Assembly (NCBI GenBank): GCA_022605425.2
Contig: CM061247.1
Span: forward strand, 1-64,000
Length of the DNA stretch: 64,000 nucleotides
Direction: 5' to 3'
From: Hamiltosporidium tvaerminnensis FI-OER-3-3
Lineage: Eukaryota; Fungi; Microsporidia
Numbering within the stretch: the stretch's first letter is position 1; each line of letters starts with the position of its first letter. Made by a program: the position numbers and the translations under genes. Below, one piece after another: positions 1 to 52,375 of the stretch. Below the pieces are notes generated by a model. It was not told where the DNA came from. It saw nothing but the letters and a program-made list of their open reading frames with translations, and made no database searches.

Positions 1-138
1 AACCCTAACCCTAACCCTAACCCTAACCCTAACCCTAACCCTAACCCTAACCCTAACCCTAACCCTAACCCTAACCCTAACCCTAACCCTAACCCTAACC
101 CTAACCCTAACCCTAACCCTAACCCTAACCCTAACCCT
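1..138. repeat. Telomeric repeat (AACCCT)23, i.e. TTAGGG on the minus strand; chromosome end
   Basis: Perfect hexamer array from base 1 to 138, then abrupt switch to AT-rich unique sequence. Confidence 0.98.
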
Positions 139-36076: not shown

Positions 36077-36332
36077 AAATAAAAATCTTATTTTAGTATC
36101 AGTGTTTTATAAAAAATTAGAATTCTTAAAATAAAAATCTTTTTTTAGTATCAGTGTTTTATAAAAAATTAGAATTCTTAAAATAAAAATCTTTTTTTAG
36201 TATCAGTGTTTTATAAAAATTTAGAATTCTTAAAATAAAAATCCTATTTTAGTATCAGTGTTTTATAAAAATTTAGAATTCTTAAAATAAAAATCTTATT
36301 TTAATATCAGTGTTTTATAAAAATTTAGAATT
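36077..36332. repeat. 52-bp tandem minisatellite, ~5 copies, directly upstream of NF-YC
   Basis: ataaaaatc starts at 36079, 36131, 36183, 36235, 36287; unit aaataaaaatcttattttagtatcagtgttttataaaaaattagaattctta. Confidence 0.95.
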
Positions 36333-39791: not shown

Positions 39792-40006
39792 TGTCTTATA
39801 TTCTACACTAGGGTTTCTTATATTCTACTATAATGTCATATAGTCTGCACTAGGGTGTCTTATATTCTACTATAGTCTACACTAGGGCTTCTTATATTCT
39901 ACTATAATGTCTTATAGTCTACACTAGGGTGTCTTATATTCTACTATAGTGTCTTATAGTCTGCACTAGGGTGTCTTATATTCTACTATAATGTACTATA
40001 TTCTAC
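39792..40006. repeat. Composite 42-bp (22+20) minisatellite with a CACTAGGGTGTC core, upstream of syntaxin
   Basis: cactaggg at 39806, 39848, 39880, 39922, 39964 (spacing 42, 32, 42, 42). Confidence 0.9.
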
Positions 40007-40236: not shown

Positions 40237-41064
40237 ATGCAAAACTTTTTATCACAAACTCGTAGAATATCTGAAGAAATAAATACATTGACAGAATACA
40301 AAGAGAAATTTATATACATTTCAAATACAAAGAGTAAGTCGGTTCTTAAAGAAAGTGAAGAACGTAATCTTGAATCACAAATAAAAGTTTTAAATAATAT
40401 GTTTTCTCAACTGAGTAGTAAAATAAAATTAGAATTAAAAAAAATGTCTGAAGAAAATGAAAAAATACAAAATGAGGAAAAAGAAAGTAATTTTTTATAC
40501 GAGACACGCAATAATCACTGGCAAGTACTTACTAAGAAATTGGTACAAGCTATTAATTCTTATAGAGAATCTCAAGTAAATTATAATAATATAGAAAAAG
40601 ACAGACTTAAATCACAATATATTATTGCCAAGCCCACAGCTACAGAAGAAGAATTAGAAGAACTTACATCAGAAAAAGGACAAGAACATTTAAAAAATGC
40701 ATTTTCTTTAGGTTCTTCTTCTGCCAAACAGATGTATTCAAGAGCTAAAGAAAGAAGTAATAATATTCAAAAATTAGCAGAATCTGTAGAAGAATTGTGT
40801 CAAATGATATCAGATTTAGATGAAATGGTTAAATCTTCAGATGTATTTATAGATAGAATAGGGGTTAGTATGAGTTCTACTAAACATTCAGTTAAAAAGA
40901 CAAATAAAGATCTTGAAAGTGCATTGAGATATCAGAGAAGTGCTATGAGAATCAAAAGGTATATTTTTGCTGGAATCGGAGTTGTAGTTTTAATTATTTT
41001 AATTTGGTTAGGAATTAAATTTTTAGGAAATCAAAATAGTGGAAATGGTGGAAATAATAATTGA
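40237..41064 (+). CDS. Syntaxin-family Qa-SNARE (Sso1/syntaxin-1-like)
   Basis: Habc-like helices, RLKSQYIIAKPTATEEELEE, SNARE heptad (ERSNNIQKLAESVEELCQMISDL), C-terminal TM anchor. Confidence 0.9.
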   Translation: MQNFLSQTRRISEEINTLTEYKEKFIYISNTKSKSVLKESEERNLESQIKVLNNMFSQLSSKIKLELKKMSEENEKIQNEEKESNFLYETRNNHWQVLTKKLVQAINSYRESQVNYNNIEKDRLKSQYIIAKPTATEEELEELTSEKGQEHLKNAFSLGSSSAKQMYSRAKERSNNIQKLAESVEELCQMISDLDEMVKSSDVFIDRIGVSMSSTKHSVKKTNKDLESALRYQRSAMRIKRYIFAGIGVVVLIILIWLGIKFLGNQNSGNGGNNN

Positions 41065-41299: not shown

Positions 41300-41750
41300 T
41301 ATTAACACCCTTTTAATGTATAGTAATATGTACCGATTATTAACACCCTTTTAATGTATAGTAATATATACCTATTGTTAATACCCTTTTAATGTATAGT
41401 AATATATACCGATTATTAACACCCTTTTAATGAATAGTAATATATCCGTATTGTTAACGCCCTTTTAATGTATAGTAATATATACCTATTGTTAACACCC
41501 TTTTAATGAATAGTAATATATCCGTATTGTTAACACCCCATTAATGTGTAGTAATATATCCGTATTGTTAACACCTTTTTAATATACCCTATCCAATCCC
41601 TATTACTAACACCCCCACTTTACTCCATTCTATCCTATATCATTATAATTATCACCCCTTTACTCTATTCTATCATATCATTATAATTATCACCCCTTTA
41701 CTCCATTCTATTATATCTCTATAATTAACACTCCCCTTTTAATATACCCT
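41300..41750. repeat. 38-bp-period array of TAACACCC cores with changing intervening sequence
   Basis: Cores at 41303, 41341, 41379, 41417, 41455, 41493, 41531, 41569, 41607, 41650, 41688, 41726. Confidence 0.95.
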
Positions 41751-41790
41751 TTTATATTACTAAAGTGTATTTTTTTTAGTTTCCCTTTAG

Positions 41791-43008
41791 ATGATATTTT
41801 CTTTTTTAAGTAAAAACTTAAATTTTTTTACTTTTCATGAAAGAAAAATAAAATTTATAATTTTGATTTTTACGTTGTATTTTTCAAAAATAAAAAGGAG
41901 TGAAGATAGTGTTTTAAGTAAAGAAAGTTTATATTGTCGTATAAATTGTATTGATAGTATTTTAATGGATTATAAGGATATAGAAGAGGTAAGGGAAGGT
42001 GAAGGGGATTGTTTAAAATATGTTTTAAATGATTTAAGTGACAATCAAAGTATATATATTTATATTAAATGTAAAAATGCTAAAAAATATTTAAAAATAT
42101 TTAAATCTTTGCAATTTTTGGGAGAAAAATTTAATATTTTATTTAAGGAAAATGAAAAATTTAAGGTAAAAAATATTTTTGAAAAAATTGAATATTTTAA
42201 GGAAAAAGTGGAGGACGTGTGTGTGAGTAGAGAAAATATTTTGGGTATTAAGAAGGATATAGATGAAAGTAATTCAAAGGTGGTGCTTATGGTTGAAAAG
42301 GTAATGAAGTGTATGGATGATTTGAAGGATGATTTTACTTTTTGTAATTATTTAAAGATGGTTTCTTCTGTTAGAAATATGAAATGTAAAGTTAAAAATA
42401 TAAAAATTATTTTATGTTCAGAGATTTTGAAGAAAAAAGGGGATTCGTTTTTGGATATAAATTTGTGTTTTTGTGCTGAAACTTTTGTAAAAATTTATCC
42501 TTTTATGAATTTTCAATGTAATTCTGATATTTTAAATATGGGAAAATATTTTTTTGAAAGTAAAGTTTTTTATAAATTTGAAAATAAATTTAATTTAAGC
42601 AATAAAATTGATATTTGTTTGTCTGAAGAAATGAAAAGTGGAAAAATATTTTTGTGTTTTTTACGAGCTTTGAATAATATGCATTCACATTCGTTGGGTT
42701 CGTATTTTTATATTCCGTTTGAAAATTATTGTGTTGAAATGGTTAGTCTTTTTCCTTTTATGGTGTTGAATATGGTTTATTGTTTGGTTGTGTATTTTTT
42801 TGGGAAAAAAAAGGAATTTAAGTTTTCATATTTTCATGTTTTGTATATTGCGTATCCATTTTTTCCTTTGATTTGTGTTTTTTTTCTGTTTAGTGAAATA
42901 TATTTACAAGGAATAATGTGTGTCTTGTTTGGTGTTTTAAACTTCAGTGTTGGAATTATTTATAATTATGTCGTTTTTTATAAAAATTTATATGAATTTT
43001 TTTACTAA
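41791..43008 (+). CDS. Membrane protein, probable divergent GPI-transamidase subunit Gaa1/GPAA1
   Basis: N-terminal TM, lumenal domain with NFQCNSDILN (cf. NGQLPNLDLVN) and LRALNNMHSHSLGSYFYI (cf. RSxNNLLERxHQSFFFYL), then several C-terminal TMs. Confidence 0.6.
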   Translation: MIFSFLSKNLNFFTFHERKIKFIILIFTLYFSKIKRSEDSVLSKESLYCRINCIDSILMDYKDIEEVREGEGDCLKYVLNDLSDNQSIYIYIKCKNAKKYLKIFKSLQFLGEKFNILFKENEKFKVKNIFEKIEYFKEKVEDVCVSRENILGIKKDIDESNSKVVLMVEKVMKCMDDLKDDFTFCNYLKMVSSVRNMKCKVKNIKIILCSEILKKKGDSFLDINLCFCAETFVKIYPFMNFQCNSDILNMGKYFFESKVFYKFENKFNLSNKIDICLSEEMKSGKIFLCFLRALNNMHSHSLGSYFYIPFENYCVEMVSLFPFMVLNMVYCLVVYFFGKKKEFKFSYFHVLYIAYPFFPLICVFFLFSEIYLQGIMCVLFGVLNFSVGIIYNYVVFYKNLYEFFY

Positions 43009-43849
43009 TATTTGATTTGTGGGAGTGGTTGATGTGTTATTAAAATTCGTATTATAAATTATTTTATTGAGGTTCGATTAAAATTTAAAGATATAGCATA
43101 AGTTTGTTTATGCATATTAAAATATAGATTAGATTTTATATCAAAAACAAAATACATTTAAATTATTGAAAACTATAAATTAAACCGTAATGTCACACAA
43201 TGGGGAAGCCCTGGTAAAACTACAAAAAATACTGCTTAATATAAAAAATATTATGACTGCTGGATTAAAAAGTCTTTAATTGTAAAAAATATTTTATAAT
43301 TTTACTTTATTCGTCATTTAAAATAAATTAAAACTTTATACCTCAAAATTTTAAGATTATTTAAATATTTTTTAATTTATAAAACCATTTTCATTCCTAC
43401 TTTTCAATTTCTAATAATTTTAAATTTTATTAAAATATTTTTTCAACTTGCACTCCACTTCATATCCACAGTGTCATTATACAATAATAAATACATTTTT
43501 TCTCAAATATAAGTTTCTAAAAATATTTTACAAAAGAAGAATACAAATTCTTCATTTTTTAATAAAAAAACTTATTTCCATTAAAAATATCCAAAAAGCC
43601 ACCTCTTTACCTTTCCCTCTTATAAACTCACTTATTTCTTTGTTGTTTTTAATTCGAAATACTCAGATATTTCCGATTTTGATAGAAATTTAAAAATATT
43701 TAAATATTTATGTATTTTAATCATAGAAAAGGTGTAGCAGTATATATTTATCCAATGACACTCATATTTATTATTTTAGTTATTATATTTGTAATTTACT
43801 TTTTATTCCTTTTCTTTGAATTATAAAGCAATCCCAATCCCTCTATTTA

Positions 43850-45691
43850 ATGGACAATCTTCCAAGAAAAAGAAGAGCTGATTTTCAACTGTCTCCATAT
43901 GCAGAAAATACAAATATAAAACAGACAGATACCTCTATAAACAAACCAACCGATACAAATCAAGAGATACAAAGAAAAAGAGCAAGAGCAAGACCATTAA
44001 ATGAACACAAAGATATTCCAACACTGAAAGGAATATTTAAAAATATAAATATTCCAAGTGAAATAAATATGATGGAGAGTGTGAAGGGGAGTGTGAATGA
44101 GAATATTGAGGAAGGTATGAAGGAGAATGGAAAGGAGAATAGAATTGCAGGTTTGAATAAATCTTTTGTTCGGGCACTTGAATATGTGATAAATGTAGAA
44201 TCTTCAAAGAATTTGATATTTTTATTTGAGCAATATAAAAAATTTTTAAAAGAAATTGAAAATGAAATATTTACAAATCCGAAAGAAAAACCGTTTTCTG
44301 AATTAAAAGATGAAAAAAAATCATTTTTTTCAACCAATAATGTGACAGATTCAGTCCAGAAAAAAGATAATATAAATCCTTTCTCCAATCTTCTGCCACC
44401 ATCTGTAGACAGAAAGGATAGCAAAGATTCTGTTAAAGATAATATAAATCCTTTCTCTAATCTTCTGCCACCATCTGTAGACAGGAAGGATAGCAAAGAT
44501 TCTGTTAAAGATAATATAAATCCTTTCTCTAATCTTCTGCCACCATCTGTAGACAATTCTGATAAGAATGATTCTGTTAAAGTTAATATAAATCCTTTCT
44601 CTAATCTTCTGCCACCATCTGTAGACAATTCTGATAAGAATGATTCTGTTAAAGTTAATATAAATCCTTTCTCTAATCTTCTGCCACCATCTGTTAACAA
44701 TTCGGATAAAAAAGATAATTGTAATCCATTTTTCAATTTATTAAATCATAATTCTCCTTCCACTGATCTTTCTATACTAAAAGAACCTGAAGATTCTTCT
44801 AAAAGTAGTTTCTGTGATCAAAATATTTTTCAATCGGATTCAAACAAAATTGATTCAAATAATTTTCAAAATCCTATATTTTCACCCGGTTTAAATAAAA
44901 AAACCGAAAATAAAAATTTAAATGACGAAAAATTTACTGAAAATATTACCAGACCGGACAAAAAACGAGTCAGTTTTGATCTATCACGTAACGAAGAACT
45001 AAACAATTCTACTTTCCATGATTCTTCATTTATGAAATCAGACGACTCTTTTTCTCTTACAAAAAGTCCACAAAATAATATTTTCATCTCATCATCTCCC
45101 AAAACCTTGTCAAATACTGTTACACAGCCATTTACATTCTACGACAAACACAATGTTAAAGATATACTAGCCTCCTCATTAAGAACTAACCCTCATACTA
45201 CACCCAATCCATTTACCATCTTCGACAAACACAATACCAAAGAAGATATAACCACTACTTCCTCACCGAAAACCACACCCAATCCATTCAAATTCTACGA
45301 CAGCCAAAACACCAAAGATATTCTTTCTAGTAATATGGATACACCAGATATATATTTACAACCCACCAATGAATATCTCCTAAATAACAAATTACAATCT
45401 CAAAATATTTCTCTCTACCACCTCAAAAACACAAAAACCAACAACGAATACATTTTACTCGGTAAGCCATACATTTACTTAAAAAACAATTTTCTTACAA
45501 TATTTTATTCTAAAAACAAAGATTCAATTCAACTTTTTAAAAATAAAGAAATACAAAATATTTCTATTAAATATACCAATGGAGACCAGTTTATTGTTAT
45601 TGGTGTAGATAATGATTTAAATTTATATAAAATATTTTTTGATAATTTTAAAGATATTTCTGTTGTTTTGGAGAATTTAAATAAAAAATAA
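43850..45691 (+). CDS. Nup2/Nup50-like nucleoporin
   Basis: N-terminal RKRRADFQL...RKRARA importin-alpha-binding-like motif; RIAGLNKSFVRALEYVINVESSKNLIFLFEQYKKFLKEIE matches the conserved Nup2/Nup50 helical segment; Phe-rich disordered middle; beta-rich C-terminal RanBD-like domain. Confidence 0.75.
   Translation: MDNLPRKRRADFQLSPYAENTNIKQTDTSINKPTDTNQEIQRKRARARPLNEHKDIPTLKGIFKNINIPSEINMMESVKGSVNENIEEGMKENGKENRIAGLNKSFVRALEYVINVESSKNLIFLFEQYKKFLKEIENEIFTNPKEKPFSELKDEKKSFFSTNNVTDSVQKKDNINPFSNLLPPSVDRKDSKDSVKDNINPFSNLLPPSVDRKDSKDSVKDNINPFSNLLPPSVDNSDKNDSVKVNINPFSNLLPPSVDNSDKNDSVKVNINPFSNLLPPSVNNSDKKDNCNPFFNLLNHNSPSTDLSILKEPEDSSKSSFCDQNIFQSDSNKIDSNNFQNPIFSPGLNKKTENKNLNDEKFTENITRPDKKRVSFDLSRNEELNNSTFHDSSFMKSDDSFSLTKSPQNNIFISSSPKTLSNTVTQPFTFYDKHNVKDILASSLRTNPHTTPNPFTIFDKHNTKEDITTTSSPKTTPNPFKFYDSQNTKDILSSNMDTPDIYLQPTNEYLLNNKLQSQNISLYHLKNTKTNNEYILLGKPYIYLKNNFLTIFYSKNKDSIQLFKNKEIQNISIKYTNGDQFIVIGVDNDLNLYKIFFDNFKDISVVLENLNKK
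44365..44735 (+). repeat. 72-bp (24-aa) coding tandem repeat, ~5 copies, NINPFSNLLPPSV
   Basis: aatataaatcc at 44369, 44441, 44513 and onward at 72-bp period. Confidence 0.95.
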
Positions 45692-45870
45692 AAAATTATT
45701 ATTTGTTGATTTAATTGTTAGAATTTATTTGAAGTTTAAGAATTATAGTATAATTTTAATTTAATAATCTTTATTAAATCATTAAAATATTAAATTATTT
45801 GTAAGTCTTAATATTATTTTTTATTATCTTATAATCTTATAATCTCATTATATATTTTCATAGGTATTTT

Positions 45871-46701
45871 TTAATAAAATTCTTGGTTAAAATATTTTTA
45901 CCATTTTTTACATGTTTTCTTCTGTTCTTTAACCACTTCTGTCTCTTCTTCCCAATCCGACTCTTCATTTATGCTATTGGTCGGTTTCATTAACGCGGTT
46001 CCTTCTTCTGAAATAAGAAGTATAATATTTTTCCTTTTTTTAACACCATCTTCCCTCTTTTCTCTTCTTTTAAAGGGGACGTTGGTTCCTCATGCATCTC
46101 TGATCTCATAATAACACCCATTGACGCTCTCTTCCAGCTCTCGTCGGCATTTAGTCTTGACTCAAGTCCTCTTCGTCGATCAAAGGAAATTGTTTCGACT
46201 GTCTTCTTAAGTACTATAGACTGAATGTATGCTTCTACATTCATGGGTATTTCTAGTCTTTTAATATGAGATTTATGGTATTTTGTCACAATACCGTCCC
46301 AGGTCATCACATAAGAAATTATCTCAACACTACACTTATAAATAAGACCCAACTCATTGGCTAGCAGGTCATACTTCCTAAGTTTTTCCATTTCAACTAT
46401 TTGAAGTGAATCTTGGGAAGTGATTCCTGCTTCAATGAGTGTTATCTTATTCTTCTTCTTATCTAAAATAAATATGTCCGGTCTGTTATTCCGAATTTTA
46501 ACATCAGTTTTTATTCTGGTGTCCACTCTTATCTCTGCATACTCATTATTAAGAATTTCTTGAACTGAGTGACTCCTAATTCGTTTTGAAGACTTAAACT
46601 TATATCTATTTAGGAGAAGTAAGTGCTGGCATCTAACCACTTCATTATGCCGTCTGGTGTAGTCATGGCCAAGTATTTTTTCACATCGAGTTGCTAGATG
46701 A
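45871..46701 (-). mobile_element. 5'-truncated RLE-type non-LTR retrotransposon, copy 2 (R4/NeSL-like architecture)
   Basis: HLATRCEKILGHDYTRRHNEVV (end of CCHC finger plus RHN motif), then PD-(D/E)xK nuclease RPDIFILD...IEAGIT...EKLRKYDLL; terminus ttaaccaagaattttattaaa. Confidence 0.92.
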
Positions 46702-46824
46702 AATGTATCCTTTATAAAAATATCTTTTTAATTTAAATTTTATTTCTGTTTTTTTATCATTTTTTTAAAACAAATCTGAAACTTTGAGAATTTATAAGAA
46801 AAATAAAATTCTTAATGATTATAA

Positions 46825-47001
46825 ATGACTTTAATGCCTAAAGAAGAAGTAGAAATAGAATTTAAAGATGTAATTATGTGGTTATCTATACTTTGTATAA
46901 TTTGTTGTATTATGTATTTACATTCTTATATTAGAAGACTTGTAAAGGTAAATACTAATAAAAATGAGGGAGATAATAGGAAAGGTATTTATAGTAAATA
47001 A
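46825..47001 (+). CDS. Small single-pass membrane protein (58 aa), not in the ORF track; weak resemblance to Kish/TMEM167
   Basis: MTLMPKEEVEIEFKDVIMWLSILCIICCIMYLHSYIRRLVKVNTNKNEGDNRKGIYSK*. Confidence 0.45.
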   Translation: MTLMPKEEVEIEFKDVIMWLSILCIICCIMYLHSYIRRLVKVNTNKNEGDNRKGIYSK

Positions 47002-47130
47002 AGGGTGTTAAATATTTAGAGAGTGTAGTGTGGAGTAAAGGGGTGTTAAATACATGGAGAGTGTAGTCTGGATTAAAGGGGTGATAAATACAAGCATGGT
47101 TTTCCATTTGATTAAAGGGGTGTTAAATAT
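46998..47130. repeat. Four TAAAGGGGTGTTAAATA-type direct repeats at 38-39-bp period with variable spacers
   Basis: TGTTA/TGATA at 47006, 47044, 47082, 47121; third spacer unrelated to the first two. Confidence 0.88.
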
Positions 47131-47213
47131 CAAGTCAATATATTCCGTTTGATCTCTTCTTTCCTTCTAAAATATAACGATTTATAAAAAAAAATAAAAA
47201 AAAGATTGTATTA

Positions 47214-47219
47214 CCCCCT
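47214..47219 (+). promoter_or_regulatory. Microsporidian CCC-like motif immediately upstream of the start codon
   Basis: ttaccccctATG; similar CCC runs precede ATGs at 29142, 40237, 41791 and 43850, matching the known microsporidian start-proximal motif. Confidence 0.6.
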
Positions 47220-47684
47220 ATGGTAGCTAACAATTATACATGGTCACAAGAATTTGATGATATTTCAATTACAGTAGAACATACAAGTAATATTAACAGT
47301 TCAGATGTATGTGTTGCGGTAATAAATGATATTTTAGAAATATCTATAAATAAAGAAATAATTATATCTGATAAATTATGTAAACCAGTTATAAATGATG
47401 AGATTGTATGGGAAATAGATGGTAATATATTGGTAGTGACACTTACTAAACGAGTCAAAGAGTGGTGGGAGTCTGCCTTTGAAGGACATGAAAAGGTAGA
47501 TGTTAGTAAGATAGCAGAGACACGTAATACTAGTTTAAATGATTTAGATTCTGAATCCAGACAAATGGTTGAAAAAATGCTTTATGAACAGAAGTGTAAA
47601 GCTACGGGTGAAAAGACAGAGGAAGAACTTAGAAATGAGGAATTGATGAAAAAATTAAATATGAGTCAGTTTGAAGGAGATTAA
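47220..47684 (+). CDS. nudC: NudC (CS/p23 domain) co-chaperone
   Basis: NYTWSQ...WEIDG..LVVTLTK...WW....GHEKVD...LNDLDSESRQMVEKMLYEQ signature. Confidence 0.93.
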   Translation: MVANNYTWSQEFDDISITVEHTSNINSSDVCVAVINDILEISINKEIIISDKLCKPVINDEIVWEIDGNILVVTLTKRVKEWWESAFEGHEKVDVSKIAETRNTSLNDLDSESRQMVEKMLYEQKCKATGEKTEEELRNEELMKKLNMSQFEGD

Positions 47685-50600
47685 TTAAAAAAAATTTAAA
47701 CGATATAATTTTCTATACGGAAGAATTCTATTATAAATATTTTTTTTATCTTACCTGATGTAATAAGGACACATTACTGAATCAGAGCAATTTTTGGTTC
47801 AACTTCTGGTTCAACTTTTGTTTATCTCGGAGAGTTTGGTTTTTATAGGCTAAGACAACTGATATTTATTTTTACATTATCTTGTCATTTGGTTTTAGGA
47901 ACGAAATAGGATTCTAGATTACTAAGTAAAATTTTCTATTTTTTTACATTTATTTATGACCTTGCTTTGTGTTACTCAGTCACAGGAGTTTGGGAACTTA
48001 TACTTACTAATAAACTAAATTCTTATAAAGTCTGGGCTCTCTCTGTTAACTGCTTTTAATCACTTATTTCAGAGGTTTTTTATGAGTTTTGGTTTTTATA
48101 CCCTTTGTATGGTTTAAGTTGATCTGGTTTATATATATGTTGGTCAACCGTCACCAATATTGCTCTAAGACAAATTATTTTATTCATTTCTAGCTTCTCA
48201 ATTTTATAAATTAAGATTCTTAGATGCTTTTTGTTTATGGTTTGCTACATTCCATTCTCTTTTTCTTTCCATTGGTTTCATAATTATCCGGCTAAATAAA
48301 TCTTAAGTATTCAAAGAGTACAATTCGTCAGAAAAAATCTAATTTTTGGACAAAATGTAGTACATTTTAATAGTTTTTAAATTCAAAGTGTATTTATTTT
48401 CTTTCTGTGATTGATAGTAAAACTTTATTCGGGATTTTTAAAGAATTTTCGGAAATTCTGGGAGATTATCTATTTTTGAACACGATTCTGATGCTATAGT
48501 ATAGCTAAAACTTTACACTACTTAGTTGTGCTAGTTGTCTTCTTTTTATTTTCTAGTTTTTAATGTTTGTTATAAATATAAATAAAAAGCTTGCAGGTGT
48601 AAGTATCTTCTTGTTTCAAACGATTGAATATCGATTTTTCCCTTACTAATTTTTGTTGGCTAATAAAACCATCTTCTTTTCTTTCTTATTCTTCTTAAAT
48701 TTTATCAAAGAAGTTTAACTATAGTGTTTGAAACTTCGTTTAAATTTAATTTTTTCCTTTAGCTATAGCCAATAAAAAGCCAATGTATTATTTAATTAAC
48801 TTTAGGCAGTTTTCATGTGACATTTCATGCCAAATTTTAAGCCATTTCTTGAATTTTCTAAAATCAGCTTGATATTCCCTGAAAGTACTTTCTACTTATG
48901 ATATAAGCTATTCAGTTATAAGTTTATTAAAGAGTTACAAATATTAATCAAAAGAAACGTTTTTTATTTTATAAGAGTTTAATTTTATATCAGTGGGAAT
49001 AGGCATAAAGTGTGCGTTATTCTAATATTCAGGCGTTTTTTCATAATCTAAACTTTGAGAGTTATAGAAAAAAATCTTTGTAAGTTCTTTTTTTTTCTAT
49101 TCTAGTATTTGGGCGTTGATCGAATCTTTACCAGATGCCTCGTTGTCATAAAAGCAATAACTATTCGGTTCCATTTCACAGAGTTGGAATTCTAATGCCA
49201 TTATTTTACTCAAAATTTACATTTATTCTTTAGAAAATTATTTTACTTGCCTAATTAATTGATTTAGCAGCAACTAAAAAAATTAGTTCATAAACCTATG
49301 ACTTTTCTAAGTCTATTCGCCTCTCCTCATTAGCTGCAATTAAAAAAACAGTTCTACCTTGAAAAACTATACCCGAGCATATCTCATGGATATAGTTCTT
49401 TAGCTTGCTTATCTAATGCTTCTGCTTTTATTTAGGATGCATGTTTATTTACGGATTTATCTGTTTTTCCGTAAACACATGATACTCTGACATTCATCAA
49501 ATATTTTTGATTTTGCTTTTCTTCATAATTTTTCGTATCAATTAATCCCTTTCATTGTTCCGCGTGCGAAAAATCAAATGTGCATTTCTCACCAACCAGA
49601 TTTACTTGACTAATTGCCAAAAAACCGATTTTGTCTTTACCAGCATCACATTGCAATTTATTATTCACCGTGCGGCTTACAATGATATATTTGTATTCCA
49701 CATGTCAAAATTTGAAAAATTTTAACTTATCGTGATACTTTCTTCAATGATTTTTCTTACATCTTGTGCTCTTGGCTTTTGATTGTAAACTTTTTCGGTT
49801 TAGTTCTTTTATTATATTTTTCCATTGTTAGCTGCAACATTTTAGTATTACAAGGTTTAAATTTATTAAATTTGCTCTTCTGTTGTCCACTCAATTTAAC
49901 ACTAGAGTGATTTCTATTATTTGTCCCTATATCACAAAACACCCACTTCTTGATTATCTAACGATGTACATGTCGTCTCTTATATTCCTTGGTCCGTAGA
50001 ACATTGTAAAAATAATTATATTTTTACAGCAACAAAGTAAACAACCAGAACACATTTTTTTTGATTTTATTGGCGAGTTTTTTTTTCCGGTGTGCAATTT
50101 ATGTATTCTTTCTCTTTTTACATTAACGTTTAGGCCTCTATTTATCGTTTTTTTAGTATAATGAGCTTGCCACATTATTTTTCTAGAATGTTTAAAAGTT
50201 TGTTTTTTTATATATCTGGTGTTTATATGAATGAGGAATTTTTGCGAAAAATTCACAAATGAAATTATCTTTCTTTATCGTTGGAAAATTTCTGGGACAA
50301 TCTCTACAAACCTGTATAATGTTATTATTCAATTCAAATGCTGTAGTCGTTGTAAATGAATTCATTTTTTAGTGTAAAATAATTCTTCGAGTATTTGTTT
50401 CAAAAGGGCTATTTTTCATGTAAATTTGCTACTGTAGAAATATCCATAGTATAATTTTAAATCACGAATTTAACAGTATCCAATGTATCTTTCTTCAGAA
50501 GTCTGTGCATATTTAGAATCCATCTTTTTAGCGTAATTTTCAAATATTTCGATTTTTATTTATTTTGAGATCTTTCTGTATATTAACAAATTATTTAAAT

Positions 50601-51484
50601 TTTCATAGCATATTCTGGTTCTAAAAAGTTGGTTCCTTTTTCTTCCATCTTTCTTTCTTCTTATACTCTGGATTTATGGCTTATTGTGAAGAATCATTTT
50701 CTTTTTTTACATGTAGAATTTCTTTAAGTTATGATTATTTGAGATAGCTAATTTACAATTTATTACACATTGCTAAATAGTTTTGCAGTATGGGGAAAGA
50801 TATTCACATTAAAAACTATCTGTTTGGTAATGACTGGGTATATTTGATATGAAAATTTTTGTTGCAATTTCGGTGGGATATAAACCACACTGGATCTATA
50901 GGCTAATTCCCTATAATCATGAGTTACAACAGATGAAAAGAAACAAAAGAAAAACTTCCAATGTTCATCCTCAACACCAAAGGTAATAGAAAATAGAATA
51001 CGTAAGTGAGCAGTATTGCAAAACTAAATTATATTTCTATAAAATTTATGTTCTATTTTTAAACTTTTTGCTATATTAATTGCTCTCGTATTGTGCAAAT
51101 GATAAATTTTTCATTGAGGAACTGGAATTGTATTTTATTCAGGTGTCTTATCTTATTTGTACATATATGTTTTTAAGATATTGAGGCTGAATGATAAATC
51201 TGTTTTAAATTTGGATTTTTTCAATTAAAAAAATGGCTCAAAAGGTAAAAATAAACTTTAGATTATAAATTCTCACTTTCTTAGTACCAATTTGCTAAGG
51301 AAACACAAGTGACCGCTAAGTTTTTTAATCTTGCACATATTTTTAGTTCATTCGTAATACATTTCCTCTATTAATATAAAAGTTTTGTTTCGTGTTTTTT
51401 TGCACAATTTTTAAAGTCATAAGACACGATGTCCTATCTTAAAAAGGTATAATTAAATTACAAACACATTTTTAAGATAATACT

Positions 51485-51626
51485 AAATATTCATTCTCTG
51501 TATGAACTATTTTGAGAATAAAAACAAAAATATCTATTAACACTTTAATATTTGAATTATATTTTAAATATTCATTCTCTGTATGAAACATTTTGAAATA
51601 AACACAAAAATATTTATTAACATTTA
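51485..51626. repeat. Two-copy direct repeat (~60 bp matched, ~80-bp period)
   Basis: aaatattcattctctgtatgaa...caaaaatat.tattaaca occurs twice. Confidence 0.8.
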
Positions 51627-51734
51627 TAGTTTATTTCAAACAACTATTTTTTAGGTAATTTATAACTCTTCTTTGAAATTTTACAGACATAAACTAACAA
51701 TAAACAAAAAAAAATAGGAAAGAATACATTTTAC

Positions 51735-51989
51735 TTAAAAAGACATTTTTCTATTTCTTTTATTTCTTCTTTTCGTTCTTATACTATTCTGTATAATTAT
51801 TCCTTCAGATTCCATATAATCAGTACCAACCAAATAATCAAACCTGTCCATTGCATCTTCAAAAAACATACCATCTTCCATTCTTTTTCTTAGAGTATAA
51901 TCTACATATATGTTGTATAGATGTGATGGTGGTAGCATTTTGTTTATTATAAACATTTCTTTATATATTTTATGATTTGTAACAATCAA
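51735..51989 (-). CDS. Short hypothetical protein or 3' gene fragment
   Basis: Protein-like 84-aa ORF with basic C-terminal tail; upstream frame interrupted. Confidence 0.35.
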   Translation of the reverse strand: MIVTNHKIYKEMFIINKMLPPSHLYNIYVDYTLRKRMEDGMFFEDAMDRFDYLVGTDYMESEGIIIQNSIRTKRRNKRNRKMSF

Positions 51990-52117
51990 ATAAATAAAAA
52001 ATATTCCTTAGTTTTATATAACTTTGAAATATAATCAACATTATAAATTATAAAGCATAGGTAGTATTTTGGTTCAAAAATGAAATTTTAATATATTCTT
52101 TAAAATCAGAATAAAAG

Positions 52118-52375
52118 AATTAACACCCTGTTAATAATGAAGTATTTTATAATGCAATAACACCCTTAAATATACTATTTTTCTAAATATAATAACACCC
52201 TTAAATATAATATTTTTCTAAATATAATAACACCCTGTTAATCATCTAGTATTTACATAATAAATTAACACCCCTTAATTATAGTATATTCCAGGTAATA
52301 ATAACACCCTGTTAATCATCTAGTATTTACATAATAAATTAACACCCCTTAATTATAGTATATTCCAGGTAATAA
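52118..52375. repeat. 35-38-bp-period TAACACCC array with several spacer types and a duplicated 74-bp higher-order unit
   Basis: Cores at 52121, 52158, 52193, 52228, 52266, 52302, 52340. Confidence 0.92.

Follow-up and report, generated by a model that had tools for sequence, protein, structure and literature searches.

The window analysed here, the first 64 kb of contig 2 (CM061247.1, 64,000 nucleotides) of the microsporidian Hamiltosporidium tvaerminnensis FI-OER-3-3, carries three short arrays in which an octamer core, TAACACCC, recurs at a nearly constant step between spacers of differing sequence. These arrays are members of a genus-level family of core-anchored minisatellites, or variable number tandem repeats (VNTRs). 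A core of approximately 17 bp is repeated at two distances, approximately 28–31 and 35–40 bp, in both coding and non-coding DNA; spacers are specific to each locus, and units turn over internally. The 38-bp arrays of the window represent the long class in its non-coding form; this class takes lengths of 39 or 36 bp where the reading frame is kept. Genome-wide results are pattern counts over 21,638,905 bp in 17 contigs, and approximately 300 kb were read directly. The arrays and the features around them are as follows (positions of the window; ORF, open reading frame).

41303–41750, forward strand: array 1, 12 cores in steps of 38 (eight times), 43, 38 and 38 bp, the cores spanning 41303 to 41726.
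47003–47125, reverse strand: array 2, 4 cores in steps of 39, 38 and 38 bp.
52121–52375, forward strand: array 3, 7 exact cores in steps of 37, 35, 35, 38, 36 and 38 bp.
1–138, forward strand: telomere, 23 copies of the hexamer AACCCT, recognized from the sequence.
40237–41064, forward strand: syntaxin gene (Pfam PF00804), ending approximately 240 bp upstream of array 1.
41791–43008, forward strand: ORF of 405 amino acids, function unassigned, starting approximately 40 bp past array 1, with a CCC motif directly 5' of its ATG.
45990–46730, reverse strand: fragment of a repeated element, recognized by copies of its flanks, with one core at 46112 that belongs to the element's own sequence and to no array.
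47220–47684, forward strand: NudC/CS-domain gene, starting 95 bp past array 2.
52678–54789, forward strand: POT-family peptide transporter gene, starting approximately 300 bp past array 3.

Seventeen exact cores occur in the window, where 0.55 would be expected; 16 lie within the three arrays and one at 46112. The first-pass annotation of this DNA had placed the arrays correctly, and the steps it described, 35–39 bp with one of 43 bp and a run of eight 38-bp steps in array 1, are borne out by the core positions. Its claim that the loci share only the octamer was too narrow. The part common to the loci is an extended core of approximately 17 bp (W-W-T, TAACACCC, Y-T-T-W-A) on a G-poor strand, and arrays 1 and 2 have a stretch of 15 bases in common. 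Array 1 is made up of seven family-A units of 38 bp, one mosaic unit (41569–41606), three family-B units (43, 38 and 38 bp) and a terminal core at 41726. The mosaic unit, whose spacer had been called unrelated, derives from its own array: it has 14 bases in common with the last unit and aligns to family A (z 3–5; inner spacer only, z 2–3). The second spacer family proposed for array 1 does recur in 38-bp steps after the 43-bp one, but it is itself related to the first (family B aligned to family A; unit 1.11, inner z 2.9–4.1). Array 2 does contain an odd spacer: read on the minus strand, its first unit has an inner spacer unrelated to those of the other two. Array 3 combines unit types of 35, 36 and 37–38 bp with mutually unrelated inner spacers and has a 74-bp dimer at its end; three of its cores lie within the palindrome TTAACA-CCC-TGTTAA or a near form. 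Outside the extended core its spacers show no relation to those of the other two arrays (mean inner z approximately 0). As a separate observation, the family-A units (41316–41582, forward strand) each place an ATG just past the core tail, opening a 12-codon frame whose stop overlaps the ATG of the next unit. The layout resembles tandem CCC-ATG start sites and is absent from family B and from arrays 2 and 3.

For comparison, orthologous loci were taken from H. tvaerminnensis and H. magnivora (four further assemblies). As the first-pass annotation had hoped to learn from such a comparison, whole units are gained, lost and swapped internally. Alleles of array 1, compared across six allele assemblies, have 8, 9, 10 or 12 units, next to a gene that differs by less than 1%; the changes are internal and yield chimeric units, and chimeric units are found at loci L053, L055 and L056. 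Alleles of array 3 have 7 or 10 cores, with the same unit types in differing orders. Array 2 is identical in five assemblies save for one base. A second allele of it, read from an assembled contig at approximately half depth (run X16), has two units (77 bp) replaced by one of 39 bp, so that the locus has 3–4 cores overall. The replacement unit keeps the 39-bp step, and its spacer resembles that of array 2's own last unit; it is the sole true exchanged spacer found, and it is local in origin. Taken together, the allele pattern is VNTR behaviour, with no polar addition: units of approximately 10–60 bp stand head to tail in arrays of less than a few kilobases, unit number varies, and variants are interspersed or chimeric. 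Two arrays of the window that lack the core, at 36077–36332 (52-bp units, non-coding) and 44363–44716 (72-bp units, in frame, NPF-type repeats), also differ in copy number between alleles (4.9 versus 8.9 copies; 613 versus 589 amino acids). Since core-free arrays vary too, VNTR turnover is general in this genome.

Genome-wide, TAACACCC occurs in 6,387 copies, against 288 for the reversed control. Core pairs number 166 at distances of 9–26 bp; 1,937 at 27–30 bp (256 of them at 28–29); 195 at 31–34 bp (approximately two thirds at 31 among the matches listed); 738 at 35–39 bp (317 of them at 37–38); 159 at 40–44 bp (approximately half at 40 among the matches listed); and 182 at 45–53 bp. Reversed-control pairs number 0–1. 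Single-base resolution inside the bins (31, 40 and 35) was obtained by eye from the first 100 matches listed. Spacing therefore has two peaks, a larger one at 27–31 bp and another at 35–40 bp, with a roughly tenfold trough at 32–34 bp; the 27–30 class is 2.6 times larger than the 35–39 class. Among frame-breaking distances, taken as a proxy for non-coding DNA, the two peaks are of similar height, with approximately 130 pairs per base at 28–31 bp, 160 at 37–38 bp and 90 at 40 bp, and a trough of approximately 15 per base at 32 and 34 bp. A single sharp peak at 35–39 bp had been predicted, with a flat distribution as the outcome that would speak against it. The spacing is sharp and far from flat, but it has two peaks, and 38 bp is not the main period of the genome.

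The 37–38 class is found at many loci on many contigs, with its own spacers at each, and short and long units are mixed within single arrays (18 adjacent pairs). A model in which the difference between 30 and 39 bp reflects a 9-bp subunit found no support, as the long class has no lag-9 signal and a weak one at lag 10. Of the 263 units sampled locally, 170 fall inside long ORFs, with lengths that are mostly multiples of three. Contig 2 is free of arrays from 90 to 264 kb, so the arrays are clustered. Some loci on this contig change polarity. At 81440–81560 a G-strand block is followed by a C-strand block 17 bp away, back-to-back, with a period of 28–30 bp; at 86827–89007 an ORF for a 726-amino-acid membrane protein holds cores whose C strand lies in the 5' part and whose G strand takes over in the 3' part, the switch falling inside the gene and a 37/39-bp array lying upstream. 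One core array is common to eight places on contigs 2, 4, 7, 13, 14, 15 and 16, mostly near contig ends, and is evidently a subtelomeric duplication.

The core itself is more constant than its surroundings. Middle cores, chosen only by exact neighbours on both sides, match the consensus at 92% per base, and 67 of 114 are exact, against none in shuffles. At 44% likeness between adjacent inner spacers (14 pairs), the middle core is still 91% intact; simulated neutral decay at that divergence leaves 53–59%. In-frame arrays give Gly-Val-Asn-type repeats, as had been suggested, and the long ORFs examined contain 106 Gly-Val-Asn/Ser tripeptides. GGT-GTT is used in 102 of these, against 18% expected by codon usage, and long ORFs cross the core in several frames and on both strands. 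This synonymous bias, together with the several frames and strands, places the constraint on DNA and not on protein. The distance is held as well. Simulated neutral indels reduce the trough at 32–34 bp to at most approximately twofold and would thus largely fill it, which implies that unit length is either selected or fixed at unit birth.

The spacers behave differently from the core. Between distant loci, inner spacers score 0.32 in 38-bp units and 0.31 in 39-bp units, against 0.29–0.30 when shuffled. The first-pass annotation had allowed that all spacers might align to one 38-bp ancestor; at these near-shuffled levels they do not. The 30-bp units score 0.40 between loci, against 0.36 in phase-preserving shuffles. 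The best matches of array 3 elsewhere in the genome reach 69–75% identity and up to 105 bits. Synthetic arrays with shuffled inner spacers, in which nothing but the extended core stays in register, reach a mean of 74% and 95 bits. Because the matches are reproduced in this way, they reveal neither a single 38-bp ancestor nor a source of spacers in the genome, and no further copy of the array 3 spacers exists there. A spacer word of 10 bases recurs in three independent contexts, always at one offset; it was chosen after the fact and is suggestive only.

The three arrays are intergenic, each within 40–300 bp of a start codon. Arrays 1 and 3 are oriented towards the downstream gene and array 2 away from NudC; the window has a general skew, C-rich upstream and G-rich in coding sequence. 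A search for NudC homologues returned only NudC itself. The TTAGGG-type telomere agrees with that known for H. tvaerminnensis (PMC10542269, PMC12449221), and proteins that cluster with those of the window bear Hamiltosporidium names. Flanks of the element that holds the core at 46112 recur at three other places in the 264 kb read, and the fragment has weak restriction-endonuclease-like matches; it is probably a non-LTR retroelement. Elsewhere in the genome, too, some single copies of TAACACCC are part of a repeated element. Several further features lie close by. A 58-codon ORF with a hydrophobic stretch (46825–47001, forward strand) stops at array 2's first core and has no Pfam match and no CCC before its ATG. 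An ORF of 73 amino acids without clear family (51735–51956, reverse strand) is divergent from the POT gene and starts 165 bp from array 3. In three DNA runs, a short multi-copy element at 50800–50950 stands out by a spike in depth and by its many loose ends. Upstream of syntaxin, at 39792–40006, a composite array of 20, 22 and 42 bp lies on the strand opposite to array 1 and differs in length in H. magnivora; its word TAGGGTGTC resembles the core and is not identical to it.

The explanation that we consider most probable, and hold with moderate confidence, is that core-anchored minisatellites duplicate and recombine in register on a core constrained at the DNA level, probably a protein-binding site resembling the microsporidian CCC start motif. 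The steps would be as follows. (i) Local duplication, unequal exchange and template switching would create units and replace them, with the core as the register point, so that a spacer would be whatever local DNA adjoins a core. (ii) A putative sequence-specific protein on the core, of the general regulatory factor type, would favour the duplication and exchange events. (iii) The bound protein would also restrict neighbouring cores to two distances approximately 9 bp apart. (iv) Under such protein-favoured copying, units would go on being copied as long as their core is intact and would decay once it is broken. (v) Selection would operate on the DNA itself and would not require the cell to benefit. 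Judging by the resemblance of the core's right half to the CCC start-site motif, that motif is a plausible origin; ordinary start sites do not include the TAACA half. At two loci on contig 1 (L002 and L024), units in register have GGG for CCC in the palindrome AACA-NNN-TGTT, with unchanged flanks. These units are apparent micro-inversions of a three-base loop, which would offer a simple route to both orientations. It had been proposed that the core is either deposited at a measured distance or selected as phased protein-binding sites; what stands of this is that the core and a narrow spacing are kept while spacers differ, and what falls is templated addition of foreign spacers.

Several points weigh against this explanation. 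The weak common consensus of the 30-bp class points to some shared ancestry and not to purely local birth. Two of the seven family-A cores in array 1 are changed, and the change is shared by alleles, so that short-term constraint on any single core is not strong. The 15 Myb-domain matches are uninformative, and no core-binding protein was identified. The data are compatible both with arrays that are tolerated and with arrays that are useful, and the local sample of approximately 300 kb was in part chosen by motif. A bolder form, which we regard as doubtful, would have a protein complex make tandem duplications of measured lengths, approximately 30 and 39 bp, from its site; a promoter-derived motif would then propagate itself without an encoded transposase and enlarge the genome.

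Among the alternatives, a selected regulatory lattice survives best, and it is possible though unlikely. The non-coding arrays would be phased sites acting as enhancers, boundaries or origins in the manner of baculovirus homologous regions (hrs), and in-gene copies would be spill-over; this reading and the one preferred above are not mutually exclusive. All three arrays lie 40–300 bp from a start codon, core and spacing are conserved, array 2 is nearly invariant across two species, and the arrays are clustered, with none at 90–264 kb of the contig. The core's right half is like the CCC motif found before many ATGs here and in other microsporidia (PMC2803860, PMC11592040), but ordinary start sites lack the TAACA half, and across 264 kb the majority of genes are without an array. 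The three arrays do not share one orientation to the nearest start, arrays 1 and 3 pointing towards the gene and array 2 away; allelic unit number varies from 8 to 12, and approximately two thirds of sampled units (170 of 263) lie in long ORFs. RNA evidence comprises a single read from the one RNA run examined.

It is improbable that one or two old satellite units, of 30 and 39 bp, were dispersed and decayed neutrally, with the apparent conservation an artefact of a core-based search. The weak between-locus consensus of the 30-bp class, the 15 bases common to arrays 1 and 2 and, weakly and post hoc, the 10-base word at one offset in three contexts would fit such an ancestry. Middle cores that played no part in the choice of loci are nevertheless 91–92% intact, against 55–81% in simulation, and inner spacers of the 38–39 class score 0.31–0.32 between loci, against 0.29–0.30 when shuffled. 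The trough is approximately tenfold, whereas neutral indels would leave at most approximately twofold.

We give little credence to phased polyadenylation or termination arrays, in which the G-rich strand would present A(A/T)TAAA beside a GU-rich word and the period would be the distance from hexamer to downstream element. A(A/T)TAAA is the 3'-end signal in this species (PMC10542269). It adjoins the core in 23% of non-coding units and in 2% of coding sense units, a contrast weakened by the non-independence of units and by stop-codon limits that account for part of the coding deficit. A majority of the units in arrays 1 and 2 have the signal, and the possible 58-amino-acid ORF stops at array 2's first core; array 3 nevertheless has none, and 71–77% of non-coding units do without it. 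Past 50 ordinary stop codons the core words are rare (GGGT once), and no motif lacking UAAA is enriched in published 3' ends (PMC10542269).

Scarcely credible is a CRISPR-like or telomerase-like templated addition, in which an enzyme would set the core at a measured distance and capture new spacers. In its favour are the repeat-spacer layout at a fixed step, one allele in which the step is kept but the spacer differs, and a core like the telomere hexamer with two extra bases. Against it, spacers recur within arrays, are of low complexity and have few Gs on one strand; alleles differ internally; new units resemble their own array; array 3 spacers are without a second copy in the genome; arrays are far from ends at most loci; and there is no Rfam match and no candidate enzyme beside the arrays. 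The proposed link of the core to telomeres or to a Myb protein likewise finds no support. The arrays are not interstitial telomeric repeats, which would be tandem copies of the telomere hexamer: the core has two inserted bases and a spacing of 30–39 bp. Resemblances to branch points, tRNA loops, piggyBac ends and HUH nicks were considered and dropped because other required features were wanting.

In four other microsporidia, 75 kb around NF-YC contained no core, a weak negative since this genome also has array-free stretches of 170 kb. A metagenome scan for three cores 35–40 bp apart gave 47 stretches, nearly all of them ordinary whole-unit repeats in unrelated DNA and none of this core family. 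In the literature searched, no paper describes the core family, its two-length spacing, its copy number or its in-frame spread. Large microsporidian genomes are mostly explained by transposons and drift. In this genome, approximately 6,000 copies of one motif, arrayed at two set distances, enlarge both intergenic DNA and proteins. Should the spacing be set by a bound protein, the family would be a compact, testable case of a minisatellite core driving its own spread, and would point to a first sequence-specific general factor in microsporidia. The arrays also provide ready-made strain markers.

Comparison with known systems places the family among core-sharing minisatellites. CRISPR arrays are similar in layout alone, a fixed word at a fixed step with spacers that vary, as the first-pass annotation had held. 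Here the repeat is 8–17 bp, spacers are recurrent and low in complexity, turnover is internal, and the host is a eukaryote; there is no 21–48-bp repeat, no protospacer and no gain of foreign spacers at one end (own genome compared), and no cas gene, the array neighbours being syntaxin, NudC and POT, with no Rfam match. Baculovirus hrs are several dispersed loci with few repeats around an imperfect palindrome that serve as origins and enhancers (PMC4535591). By analogy they may be a model for a possible function of the non-coding arrays; unlike the arrays here, their units are few and highly conserved over the whole length. The microsporidian CCC-like start-site motif (ACCCTT, T7-ACCCC) resembles the core in having ACCC, then pyrimidines and an AT-rich tail (PMC2803860, PMC11592040), and a CCC motif is seen before many ATGs in this genome. 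It differs in being single and within approximately 20 bp of an ATG, in lacking the fixed TAACA half, and in being neither arrayed nor present in both orientations in genes; the arrays end 40–300 bp from annotated starts, and adjoining genes have their own CCC. Haag et al. described unexplained Asn-rich, in-frame expansions in conserved Hamiltosporidium MCM proteins and considered inteins; a DNA motif was not examined (PMC6944219). The coding arrays are likewise Asn-rich and in frame, and by this likeness core arrays may explain the MCM expansions.

The closest relatives are the hypervariable minisatellites of the Jeffreys 33.6/33.15 type, dispersed VNTR loci with a short common core, differing units and variable unit number (PMC3909909). 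That ordinary minisatellites conserve the whole unit, as had been argued in setting these arrays apart, was too narrow a view, as such core-sharing families are known (PMC3909909). Human tandem repeats also document recombination-linked instability and template-switch insertions (PMC7615360). The Hamiltosporidium arrays have the same defining trait, many dispersed VNTR loci built on one short core. They differ from the Jeffreys families in having two period classes and approximately 6,000 cores in a 21.6-Mb AT-rich genome, in their strong strand asymmetry and in the many arrays that lie in frame in genes; a hotspot protein is here only putative.

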